Part shown: positions 8,711 to 11,699 of the stretch, piece by piece
Numbering within the stretch: position 1 is the stretch's first letter
How the letters are laid out: every line of letters starts with the position of its first letter
Source: Zygophlyctis sp. KS116
Taxonomy: Eukaryota > Fungi > Chytridiomycota
NCBI GenBank assembly: GCA_054661495.1
Contig: BAAFSQ010000014.1
Location: forward strand, 1-32,000
Reading direction: 5' to 3'
DNA length: 32,000 nt
Position numbers and translations under genes: made by a program
The notes under the pieces: model-generated
Told to the model about the DNA's origin: nothing
The model's database searches: none
What the model saw: the letters and a program-made list of their open reading frames with translations, nothing else

Positions 8711-9307
8711 ATGCATCTCTATCTAACTCATGATTTTGATGGAGATTCTAACGAAATCTCTGATTGGATAAAGAACTTAACAGAGTCTAATCTGTTCAAA
8801 TTACTATCTGCAAAAGATGCAATTGATAGTAATCCATTTATGTCTAGTGTCTTTTATGGAAAGTATACGATTGGTATAAAAGTTTTAGAACTTTTACCTA
8901 AATCTCAACGTAAAGACATTGTAATGAATTTGAATAGTTTTGGTTCAAATGTATTACACATTGCTGCATCTAGAGGATACTTGGAATTTTTAACTCTTTT
9001 TAAACAAAAATTCTCATCTTGGGGGCTACTTTCAGAGGATATTATCAATATGATTACTCAAAAAGAAGTACACGAAGCTATTCCGATTGAAATGGCTTAC
9101 TTTCAGAATAGTGTACGTGGTCGTGATAGAGGAGGTATAGTTTCCTTTTTCTCGATTTGGATGTGTGAATTAGGGGTATACGTTCCACCACCCCATCCAG
9201 CTCAAATATTTGCAGCATTACTACCTGATATGTACCCTATCCAGCAAAATGCACTAGATCCTGTCGTAGTAAATGAAAATCTTTTCTTTCAGTCTGAAAT
9301 AAACTAA
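8711..9307 (+). CDS. Ankyrin-repeat-containing protein, ~198 aa
   Basis: Ankyrin-like GSNVLHIAASRGYLEFL and degenerate repeats NPFMSSVFYG and IPIEMAY; first ATG at 8711. Confidence 0.6.
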   Translation: MHLYLTHDFDGDSNEISDWIKNLTESNLFKLLSAKDAIDSNPFMSSVFYGKYTIGIKVLELLPKSQRKDIVMNLNSFGSNVLHIAASRGYLEFLTLFKQKFSSWGLLSEDIINMITQKEVHEAIPIEMAYFQNSVRGRDRGGIVSFFSIWMCELGVYVPPPHPAQIFAALLPDMYPIQQNALDPVVVNENLFFQSEIN

Positions 9308-9424
9308 ACCTAGTTTTCTTTTTAGAACCCCTACCATTGACAAAAAAATAACGCCACTTTGACAATGCCCTAAGCAAGGTTTTAAAAAAAATACAAGCCC
9401 TAAGACTCTTGAAAAAAAATTAAA

Positions 9425-10372
9425 ATGGCAGCGGTAAGTTTATTACAAGGGGCACTGGCGGGATCCTAGGAGACGCAAAATCAGAGATCGCAAGATCTCT
9501 TAGGAAATTTAATTTCCCATGACCTTAGGAATCTAATTCCAATGACCCTTTGCGTCTTCTCTAATCTATTAGTCAAAATCTACAAAAAAACCTGTTGCAA
9601 AGTCTGTAAAGGCAAAAGCCCCAGTCAATCCCTTGATTGAGAAGAAACCAAAGAATTTTGGAATCGGACAAGATATTCAGCCAAAGAGAGATCTCAGTCG
9701 TTTTGTTAAATGGCCAGAATATGTTCGTTTACAAAGACAAAAGGCTATCCTTAAGATGCGTTTAAAGGTTCCTCCAGCAATTAATCAGTTCTCTAAATGT
9801 CTGGATAAGAATACTGCTACCAATCTTTTCAAATTACTCAACAAGTACCGCCCAGAAACTTCAATCGAGAAAAAGGCTCGTTTAAGAAGTGCTGCTGAAA
9901 CAGTGGCTGCTGGAGGTAAAGTCGAGCAAGGAAAGAAGCCAGTCATGGTTAAATATGGTATTAATCATATTACTGCATTGGTTGAAGCTAAAAAGGCTTC
10001 ATTGGTTGTGATTGCTCATGATGTTGATCCTATTGAAATTGTTGTATGGCTTCCTGCTCTTTGTCGTAAAATGGGAGTTCCTTACTGTATTGTCAAGTCA
10101 AAATCTAGATTGGGAACTGTTGTTCACAAGAAAACTGCTACTGCTTTAGCTATTACAGATGTTCATCCTGAAGATAAACAATCTTTGGCTGCTTTAGTAA
10201 CTGCTATTAAGAGCAATTGTAAGTTTTTAAAGGAAAATTCTTATATATAGTCAATGACAAGTTTGATGAAACTAGAAAAGTATGGGGAGGTGGTATCATG
10301 GGTCAGAAATCGCAAGAAAAGACTCTAAAGAGAGAAAAGGCAGCTGCGAGAGAAATTAAAGCTCGTGTTTAA
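9425..10372 (+). CDS. RPL8: 60S ribosomal protein eL8 (L7a/Rpl8), 3 exons, ~258 aa
   Basis: [30 protein letters not shown] and [27 protein letters not shown]. Exon 1 is ATG GCA GCG; introns 9434-9572 (139 nt) and 10219-10250; spliced length 777 nt. Confidence 0.97.
9468..9560 (+). promoter_or_regulatory. Structured RNA element inside RPL8 intron 1 (candidate cis-regulatory element)
   Basis: 12-bp closing stem 9468-9479/9549-9560. It encloses a 7-bp GCAA-tetraloop hairpin (9483-9500) and two hairpins GGAA..TTCC, each followed by (C/A)ATGACC. Confidence 0.7.
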
Positions 10373-10384
10373 AAAATATGGTTT

Positions 10385-11699
10385 CTATTCACAAGATGAA
10401 GGATTAAACCTAACAATAATAATACTCAAGTTATCAGTTGAGAAATTTTTCAGAGAGTGGTCCAGTAGCTTTTGAGCAGACTCTTGAGGATCAGTCACTT
10501 CCCCCAATACTTCTGCAGCACCCTGATCTGTACAGACATCCCAAACCTACCAATAAATTTAATGAATTTACCCCATCACAGGCAAGTATTAACAAGTCAT
10601 CTTGCGGTGATAGAATTGTTTCTGTTGTGTAAGGATTTCCAATCACCCATTCCTTCATTGATTGATCTCCTAAAGAACGTGTCACTGCAAGAACTCCTAC
10701 AATTTCATTATTTTATAAACTTACCATTTACTCTACTATTAAGCATAAATCCACCTTTTTCCTTTACCCTTGTCGACTCTGAAGGATCACTTCCCTTATG
10801 ATCATATGATAGTCTAATTGCTTGACCATTACGGCTATAAATTTTAGTTTAGACTTTTACCGTAAAACTGCTCTTGCATCCCCAACATTTGCTGTATATA
10901 AAATCCTCTAGTCTTTTAGAACAATATTTAATACTTTTTTAACTATTTTTTCATCAATTTTCCTGTCTTCATATCTAACAAAAGCAACAATAACTGTTGT
11001 CCCTGCAAAAATTTCTTTTCTTTGAGACATTTGATAATCAACATCTATAAATGTTTTATTCAAAACATCAGGAATTGGATCATTTGGACATTCCTTTAAG
11101 AATTTAATAAATGTCTATGATAAACTGAAATTTTCCTACCTCGTGTAAGAACTTTTGACAATAATCTGCGGCAGACTTTCCAGCATGCCCATCATAAATT
11201 GCAAAAAATCCTGATCCTTGTTGTTGATCAAAATTATAAAAGTAAACATGAGCATCTTCCATTGTCCTTCTATACCTTTTATTTTTATCTACTGCAACTC
11301 CAATTGAAAATCCACACGTCTCATATTCACGTATCATTTCCTGTGGATCTTCTGAAATATCATCTGATGGTTCTATAGATGTAGCTGAGCCTATCAATGG
11401 TTGAGAATTGAATTTCTGAAAGTCTGAAGCCAAGTCTGTTTTTAAAGTCGCCAAAAACTCAGAGTCATCTGGGTCTAGATTATTAAAATCTATATTTGGG
11501 TTTGAGCAATTTGCTTTTTCTTTAAATTACAAAAATCCTTATTACCCGGCGGTGGACTATCATCAACCATGATCATTGTTGCTGGTGTCAAATCCTCTAC
11601 CAACCAATTAGAAGAAGCCGCCTTAATTTTTTCATTTGGCAAAAGACAATTATTTGCCGTTGAATCTATCTCTTCTTTCGACCGACTTTTATCTGTCAT
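10385..11699 (-). CDS. PTC1: PP2C protein phosphatase, Ptc1-like (7 exons, ~385 aa)
   Basis: Motifs: [39 protein letters not shown]|VWDV, STDNLS. Introns 11520-11545, 11115-11139, 10908-10934, 10835-10860, 10697-10724, 10547-10571; spliced length 1158 nt. Confidence 0.9.

Follow-up and report, generated by a model that had tools for sequence, protein, structure and literature searches.

The eL8 gene of the chytrid Zygophlyctis sp. KS116 (mammalian RPL7A, yeast Rpl8; Pfam PF01248) lies on the + strand at positions 9425–10372 of the stretch of DNA analyzed here, the first 32,000 nucleotides of contig BAAFSQ010000014.1 (hereafter the window), and its first intron raises a question: is the elaborate RNA structure that can be drawn for it functional and, if so, what recognizes it and to what end? 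Intron 1 is 139 nt long (9434–9572, + strand) and runs from a GTAAGT donor (9434–9439) through a branch-like CTAAT (9561–9565) to a TAG acceptor (9570–9572). We have very little doubt that it contains a conserved functional RNA structure. The structure is conserved, its helices covary, and it is restricted to the eL8 gene. That excess eL8 binds a non-standard kink-turn (k-turn) in this structure, one with U at position 2n, and so blocks the splicing of intron 1, is a proposal that we regard as evenly poised between being right and being wrong.

Folded whole and without constraint, intron 1 gives a multibranch structure that is at once the minimum free energy (MFE) prediction (-37.7 kcal/mol) and the centroid, with each feature where the sequence-only reading of this DNA had drawn it. 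Without its first two bases, the intron has a near-isoenergetic alternative as MFE and the multibranch fold as centroid; in this form the fold has a z of -2.68, and 1 of 200 shuffled sequences is equally stable. The outer stem P0 pairs AGGAGACGCAAA (9468–9479) with TTTGCGTCTTCT (9549–9560) on the + strand, and the 12 bp proposed earlier were recovered by the fold and by the repeat finder, which reports a 12-nt inverted repeat with 92% complementarity. The 3′ strand of P0 stops one base before CTAAT and 12 bases before the acceptor. Inside P0 stands the P1 hairpin (9483–9500, +), AGAGATC-GCAA-GATCTCT, with 7 bp and a GCAA loop, which ends in CUCU immediately 5′ of the first UA. It is followed by two k-turn-like units on the same strand: unit 1 (9501–9524) comprises UA (9501–9502), a helix of GGAAAT (9503–9508) with ATTTCC (9512–9517), CAT (9518–9520), GA (9521–9522) and CC (9523–9524), and unit 2 (9526–9548) comprises UA (9526–9527), GGAAT (9528–9532) with ATTCC (9536–9540), AAT (9541–9543), GA (9544–9545) and CCC (9546–9548). 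The common formula is 5′-UA-[helix opened by G and closed by C]-N-A-U-G-A-C-C-3′. As the tandem copies of the earlier claim would have it, the repeat finder returns direct repeats, CTTAGGAA at 9499 and 9524 and TTCC[C/A]ATGACC at 9514 and 9537. Defining a strict unit as TA, a helix of at least 5 bp, NAT and GAC within a span of at most 30 nt, we find two in the window, adjacent and both in intron 1, with none on the other strand; a second-order Markov model predicts 0.41 for a 32-kb strand. A non-canonical (NC) helix formed by 5′ AAGGGG and ACCCUU in the alternative MFE structure is conserved only in the closest relatives, and was dropped.

The units are as restricted in the genome as in the window, well-formed ones being found only in eL8 intron 1. 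The pattern TAGG..CC.ATGAC has 42 matches in the genome against 77 for a control, and proper helices occur only in the two matches of intron 1; one other case, with 4 bp, lies on contig 83 antisense to a 679-aa open reading frame. No compact unit was seen at the genes of this genome for eS12, Snu13, Nhp2, eL30 and a fifth protein with an L7Ae domain. A miniature inverted-repeat transposable element (MITE) or other dispersed repeat was rejected as an identity, intron 1 matching only itself in the assembly of 12.7 Mb in 1175 contigs; a small nucleolar RNA (snoRNA) of the box C/D class was likewise rejected, the intron having no CUGA, no UGAUGA and no Rfam match. Searches with Rfam 15 returned no family in intron 1 (positions 8800–10800, E up to 10) and none in the introns of 12 related loci (E up to 1), so that the element is neither of the two things, a MITE or a known snoRNA, that would have emptied the earlier claim. 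A covariance model (R1; 29 positions, 3 pairs) was too small to be informative: it scored 150 of some 22,000 candidates and did not return the intron.

Freshwater metagenomes contain near-identical DNA, and two loci close to the window show how the intron has changed. In L002, which has 97% DNA identity, intron 1 differs by one substitution and one inserted T, the latter extending P0 to 13 bp. The more distant L004 encodes an exon 2 product 94% identical to that of the window, and its exon 1 reads ATG CCA GCG followed by an identical GTAAGT donor. Here the intron core (9461–9560) is identical at 88 of 95 positions (93%), against 127 of 186 (68%) at the third codon positions of conserved residues and 39 of 89 (44%) in the upstream DNA, where the 5′ flank is unalignable. 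The differences in the core fall in three hairpin loops; the sequence of P0 is unchanged, and an A-to-G change in unit 1 retains pairing as U-G. P1 has 6 bp and a 3-nt loop in L004, so while the GNRA hairpin of the sequence-only reading is present in the window, its tetraloop is not conserved even in this nearest relative. Judged by core, third positions and upstream DNA together, the intron core is under purifying selection between these two sequences.

A lack of conservation in orthologous introns had been named beforehand as grounds for refuting the earlier claim, and this refutation clearly fails: a unit with compensatory changes in its helix occurs in eL8 intron 1 of four fungal phyla. 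Between the ATG and exon 2, the eL8 gene of Spizellomyces punctatus has two tandem units (GGAG/CUCC and GGAG/CUCU), that of Gorgonomyces haynaldii has one (GGAAC/GUUCC-AAU-GACC), and that of Zopfochytrium polystomum has one with a 10-bp helix and GAU-GA. A unit also stands upstream of eL8 exon 2 in the metagenome loci L085, L005, L014, L015 and L016, and in L006–L010, which are assigned to the Neocallimastigomycota because their protein cluster includes the eL8 of Neocallimastix and Piromyces. In L015 (L015:90-322; 72% aa identity to exon 2 of the window) the unit occurs four times in tandem as TA-GAGG-agt(t/a)aa-CCT(C/T)-(G/A)AT-GA, three of the copies being spaced at a 37-nt period, so that the copy number of the unit ranges from one to four across lineages. 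Two of the Neocallimastigomycota loci carry a decayed second unit after the intact one (L006:205-250 and L008:387-430), UUA-GAAU...AUUC-CUU-UA or CAU-UA, with UA replacing GA, which looks like a former tandem copy without its GA. An outer stem of unrelated sequence surrounds the unit or units in the predicted fold of L089, and one is predicted for L088, where the two inner units were read by eye.

Across loci the helix of the unit takes forms such as GGAA/UUCC, GGAG/CUCC, GGAAC/GUUCC, GAAUGU../..ACAUUC and GUGGUAUC/GAUAUCAU, changing with compensation around a constant UA, bulge U and GA. The UA that had been remarked on in the window, where a GA would be canonical on the non-bulged strand, is there as described, but it is an invariant feature of the element and not a defect of these copies. 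Among 14 short instances, 100% of helix cells pair, a figure that is partly so by construction, most instances having come from a scan that required a helix; both-sided changes are seen in 3 of the 4 modelled pairs, and covariation scores 0.68, compared with 0.31 for shuffled alignments, with slid registers all far lower. The word C.ATGAC occurs upstream of exon 2 at 1.29 per kb, 3.7 times the background of 0.35 per kb. The bulged-strand word without the rest of the unit was seen in Gonapodya (CUCC-AAU-GAUG), Allomyces (GCC-CAU-GACCC) and Lobosporangium (CUC-CAU-GACC), the last of which gave no unit in a strict scan of eL8 intron 1. In Gonapodya prolifera, intron 1 has no evident helix, and GUUC-AAU-GACCC in a later, long eL8 intron (L097:1960-1985) may be a chance occurrence or a relocated unit. 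For Zopfochytrium polystomum (GCA_025765615.1, L087:1201-1345), the deposited eL8 model of 292 aa begins inside the apparent intron 1 and reads through the element, and other deposited fungal eL8 models of 290–330 aa may share this N-terminal artefact.

Nor is the element confined to this organism; it recurs across fungi and was in part catalogued in 2017 (PMC5640933). About 25 further loci, at 63–70% identity, show a spread-out form in which UAGAGC(U)CCGAG is followed by 50–90 nt with a GCUGAC or GCUAAC branch site and then by CUC-AAU-GA-CC-AG, whose final AG is the acceptor of intron 1. Among these loci a taxon was assigned for L020, an Agaricomycete with 85–90% protein identity to Dentipellis, Trametes and others. 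Unconstrained folds of L020, L022, L038, L041, L053 and L055 share a three-way junction in the order P0, P1 hairpin, two to four bases ending in UA, P2, and AAUGA leading back into P0. In this Agaricomycete-type form, P0 is GCUGG/CCAGC and contains the acceptor AG, P2 is closed by GAG/CUC with the branch site looped inside, 3b.3n is predicted to be C-G, and P0 takes the place of the NC helix with P1 inserted in the opposite strand. Eleven loci of the Agaricomycete type (L020, L022, L031–L033, L036, L038, L047, L055, L059 and L073) are contigs of about 1.0–1.4 kb in which intron 1 is present and exon 2 continues to the stop uninterrupted; these would be transcripts retaining intron 1 if the genomic genes have further introns.

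The catalogued part is the rpl7-l8-s3 motif (Li and Breaker, 2017, BMC Genomics 18:785; PMC5640933, supplementary file 14), described from an intron of the “L8” (eL8) gene in 25 species of Pezizomycotina only and modelled as two long hairpins plus a purine-rich paired segment, with no function assigned and neither a k-turn nor an outer helix proposed (PMC5640933). The published alignment runs from a hairpin, often with a GAAA loop, ending in CUCU, through (C/U)-UA-GAG, AGAAGA, GCUGAY and UCUUCU to CUC-AAUGA(C/U), the last being left unpaired at the 3′ end of that model (PMC5640933). Compared by eye with this alignment, the window element, likewise in an eL8 intron, reads GAUCUCU-UA-GGAA...UUCC-CAU-GACC, the same core order with the same invariant bases and with a helix that covaries, and from core and position we infer that the two are homologous. 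The long form is also carried by metagenome loci whose eL8 exons follow immediately downstream, and the published motif has no entry in Rfam 15. The window differs in that its units are hairpins of 5–6 bp with 3-nt loops in place of the long P2 with AGAAGA/UCUUCU, in that the branch-like CTAAT lies outside the helix whereas the inner hairpin of the motif holds the branch site, and in that the unit is tandemly duplicated and all of it closed by a 12-bp outer stem. On this comparison of sequences, the window element is a variant and not a typical member of the rpl7-l8-s3 motif, namely a compact tandem version of something partly catalogued before; the k-turn and the mechanistic reading are new. 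Full-text searches on eL8/RPL8 in connection with k-turns, autoregulation or pre-mRNA turned up no paper on this element, and eL8 goes unmentioned in Gao, Jones and Rivas (2021). The screen of Li and Breaker also lists an “rpl7 motif” (PMC5640933, supplementary file 15) with 22 examples from introns of the Eurotiomycete “L7” gene, laid out like our unit as GCGAC-UA-GACC-loop-GGUC-GAU-G(C/U)U-GUCGC, with a true outer helix and with GY replacing GA.

What kind of structure would such a unit form? Each is k-turn-like in sequence, with C=G closing the helix, three bulged bases of which the last is U, then GA, and UA opposite. Read as a k-turn, the hairpin would be the canonical (C) helix and NAU the bulge, whose protruding U is what L7Ae-family proteins would grip; the G would pair with the A of UA (1b.1n), the following A would face U (2b.2n, a non-standard combination), and 3b would be C. 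A G opens and a C closes the C helix in both units of the window, and the closing pair is G-C in 12 of the 14 aligned instances and G-U in the other two. The bulge is CAU and AAU in the window and N-A-U in 14 of 14 instances, most of which were found by a scan requiring N-A-T. The G directly 3′ of the bulge and the A directly 5′ of the C helix are invariant in the aligned instances. The A2b.G2n pair of the standard k-turn is lacking, 2n being U in every instance except L005, where it is A. The element would thus be placed not with the standard k-turns but in a non-standard class like Kt-23, with which it shares the U at 2n. Natural k-turns with U at 2n exist, U being the commonest base at this position in Kt-23, which still folds (PMC5061560), and C at 3b favours folding, being one of two features that allow it (PMC5061560, PMC4382518). 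P1 interrupts the non-bulged strand, as a third helix does in a k-junction; in the k-junctions of TPP riboswitches, however, the third helix lies opposite the loop, whereas here P1 falls between 2n and 3n, or before UA.

Another comparison is with Kt-15 (helix 15 of the 23S/25S rRNA), which is the natural ribosomal site of the protein that the host gene encodes. Both eL8 and its archaeal counterpart L7Ae hold Kt-15 by gripping a U in the bulge (PMC3553981); the site is non-standard or complex at 2b.2n, with a U in a triple (PMC4005666), it has C-G at 3b.3n, as the Agaricomycete form of the intron element does, and it folds only with protein (PMC4382518, PMC4005666). The element may therefore resemble a site that is folded only when an L7Ae-family protein holds it, as a sensor requires, and mimicry of Kt-15 is put forward here as a hypothesis by analogy.

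We favor eL8 as the ligand because the element is found only in the eL8 gene across four phyla; this ligand and the direction of its effect on splicing are what we infer. eL8 present beyond the need of ribosome assembly would bind sites in its own pre-mRNA, and binding would stabilize the two units and thereby P1 and P0. With the 3′ strand of P0 abutting the branch site, access of the U2 small nuclear ribonucleoprotein (snRNP) or of the branch-binding protein, and with it recognition of the 3′ splice site, would be hindered. If retained, intron 1 presents an in-frame TAG at 9467–9469 (the 15th codon), and this stop would make the unspliced message unproductive. In the Agaricomycete form the acceptor AG is part of the outer helix, and the branch site lies in a loop that the C helix extrudes, so that a block to splicing would be a natural outcome of folding. 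Precedents for autoregulation within the same protein family are yeast L30 and archaeal L7Ae: in yeast RPL30, excess L30 binds a k-turn-type internal loop in its own pre-mRNA and blocks splicing. By analogy, the eL8 element would follow the same regulatory logic, with a ribosomal protein gene of the L7Ae/L30e family and a k-turn-type loop in its pre-mRNA. It differs from RPL30, whose site sits at the 5′ end and takes in the 5′ splice site, in lying in the 3′ half of the intron by the branch and 3′ splice sites, in having eL8 as its protein, U at 2n and tandem sites, and in being known from sequence analysis. An L30e k-turn structure (1T0K) is listed in PMC5061560. The mRNAs of eL8/L7A undergo unproductive splicing and nonsense-mediated decay in C. 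elegans and human, and the review reporting this names no RNA element or ligand for it (PMC8047918).

The gene model is as follows. Exon 1 (9425–9433, +), read from the sequence, is ATG GCA GCG, and removal of intron 1 would join MAA in frame to the rest of eL8. Exon 2 (9573–10218, +) carries the Ribosomal_L7Ae domain (PF01248) and is identified by protein match and by the metatranscriptome contigs that cover it; intron 2 (10219–10250, +; 32 nt, GT..AG) is spliced in an RNA contig, and exon 3 (10251–10372, +) ends with the stop TAA at 10370–10372. Exons 2 and 3 were searched separately; among named proteins the best matches come from chytrids, at 82–85% identity. Both exons are covered by metatranscriptome contigs of four runs, with intron 2 spliced out: the joint from 10218 to 10251 is contained in one contig from X5, while a loose end from X10 matches the start of exon 3. 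Three pyrimidine-rich UAG|G sites in intron 1 (9464–9468, 9499–9503 and 9524–9528) look like 3′ splice sites, and two of the three are the UA-G of the k-turn-like units; by the reading frame, use of an acceptor at UAG|G 9503 or 9528 would yield an out-of-frame or stopped mRNA.

Several observations weigh against feedback by eL8 through a k-turn. The k-turn assignment draws on sequence signature and topology; the CC or CCC after GA in the window finds no Watson-Crick partner, P0 beginning 3 nt later, and with these bases locally unpaired the regular NC helix is missing. In Kt-7, replacing the G at 2n by U abolishes ion-induced folding (PMC5061560). The comparison with Kt-15 in the host's own rRNA is impossible, because the large-subunit (LSU) rRNA of the assembly lacks its first 337 nt: the sole LSU piece, on contig 637 (L093:1-3100), begins only at position 338 of the 3401 in the model, the assembly yielded no 5.8S, the rDNA unit is incomplete, and an LR0R-like match is not rRNA. 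The construction of the 14-instance set, noted above, belongs here as well, and enrichment, though still positive as it is for the word C.ATGAC, is weaker when only the anchors are required than in the helix-requiring scan: NATGA[CT] preceded by TA and a pairing partner gives 28 cases at 4 bp, where 14.2 are expected, and 16 at 5 bp, where 6.3 are. The strict scan of eL8 intron 1 found no unit in Gonapodya, Allomyces and Amoeboaphelidium. None of the metatranscriptome contigs from the four runs extends over 9300–9595, so that exon 1 and intron 1 are uncovered. Finally, the layout of the Eurotiomycete “L7” intron motif could fit a shared ligand other than eL8.

Might the structure instead do its work without eL8? 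A protein-independent fold, or a site for an unrelated protein, could set constitutive splicing by bringing the branch and 3′ splice sites together or by hiding a cryptic UAG|G, with no feedback involved. Yeast introns do contain structures that bring the acceptor closer to the branch site, the Agaricomycete-type fold has the branch site inside it and the 3′ splice site base-paired, and each unit holds a UAG|G resembling a 3′ splice site. We nevertheless think this explanation improbable, though deserving of attention: the unpaired UA, the bulge U and GA are fixed over four phyla while the helices are free to vary, which argues that a specific shape is recognized and that mere bridging is not the purpose; the chytrid units are compact hairpins without anything to bridge; and restriction to one gene, that gene encoding a k-turn binder, would be a coincidence.

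The chief rival to eL8 as ligand is Snu13 (15.5K), although Nhp2, eL30 or a further member of the L7Ae family would serve, and its binding could tie eL8 output to the machinery of the snoRNPs and spliceosome or repress excision of the host intron. The bulged strand of the U4 snRNA k-turn is CC-AAU-GA, the same as that of the element, and the occurrence of a similar small motif in Eurotiomycete “L7” introns hints that the ligand may not be tied to one gene. Kink-turns in which a 3-nt bulge ends in U and GA comes next are bound by Snu13/15.5K (PMC5061560), and in mammals thousands of 15.5K-bound intronic K-loop RNAs (klRNAs) are reported to suppress excision of their host introns (2026 preprint, bioRxiv 10.64898/2026.08.03.742641). 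The klRNAs are intronic, as the element is, and of the k-turn class, and they are reported to be bound by 15.5K, an L7Ae-family protein, and to repress excision of the host intron; they are however mammalian and not gene-specific, and have terminal C (RUGAUGA) and D (CUGA) boxes and an NC helix without a C helix, whereas in eL8 introns the element's C helix is strong, a D box is absent and the NC helix is weak or remote. A general k-turn binder leaves the restriction to the eL8 gene unexplained: across four phyla the element is found only there, and in this genome it is not at the Snu13, Nhp2, eL30 or eS12 genes or elsewhere. The invariant departure from the Snu13 consensus (U at 2n, no D-box CUGA) also argues for another specificity. 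Snu13 or a relative is, on this evidence, an improbable ligand too, and its case is no stronger than that of constitutive splicing.

A third explanation, that a small stable RNA, snoRNA-like but atypical or of some other non-coding kind, is processed out of the intron after splicing, recalls that mammalian RPL7A introns host box C/D snoRNAs and that the unit resembles in topology an internal D′/C′ pair, with a CUUA-like box 5′ and an NAUGA box 3′. We consider it very improbable, given that intron 1 and 12 related loci gave no Rfam match, that the intron has no CUGA D box, RUGAUGA C box or guide-length spacer, and that the Dikarya element includes the branch and 3′ splice sites and so cannot be released intact; nor does any RNA contig cover intron 1, though small RNAs would escape assembly. 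That the units are a functionless chance product of local tandem duplication in an AT-rich intron is barely credible, for although they are direct repeats 23–25 nt apart, as a recent duplication would leave, the two adjacent strict units exceed the 0.41 expected per 32 kb, the core is conserved at 93% against 68% at synonymous sites between the window and L004, and a unit stands in the orthologous intron of four phyla, comparative data that already contradict it.

Feedback of eL8 on its own splicing remains the reading that we prefer, and the versions of the element in the same intron of four fungal phyla make it probably an old switch. In its broadest form, which we hold more tentatively than the feedback itself, the element would be an ancient eL8 sensor at least as old as the common ancestor of Chytridiomycota, Neocallimastigomycota and Dikarya, a non-standard k-turn within a three-way junction, mimicking Kt-15 and controlling use of the branch and 3′ splice sites, compacted in chytrids to two to four tandem hairpins. 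If this is true, the tandem hairpins could allow cooperative, switch-like feedback.

Feedback acting on pre-mRNA is documented for only a handful of eukaryotic ribosomal proteins, mostly in budding yeast, and to our knowledge the RPL8 genes of S. cerevisiae have no intron. The element is compact, easily mutated and conserved from chytrids to mushrooms and moulds, including the transformable Spizellomyces, Aspergillus, Neurospora and Coprinopsis, so that the question is directly testable. A positive answer would add a natural k-turn with U at 2n that has a regulatory role in a protein-coding gene, would assign a function to an orphan motif of the 2017 fungal screen, and would flag a cause of N-terminal mis-annotation of eL8 in fungal genomes. 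An eL8 sensor of this kind, if true, would explain in mechanistic terms, for the first time, why eL8/L7A messages are spliced unproductively, as has long been known.

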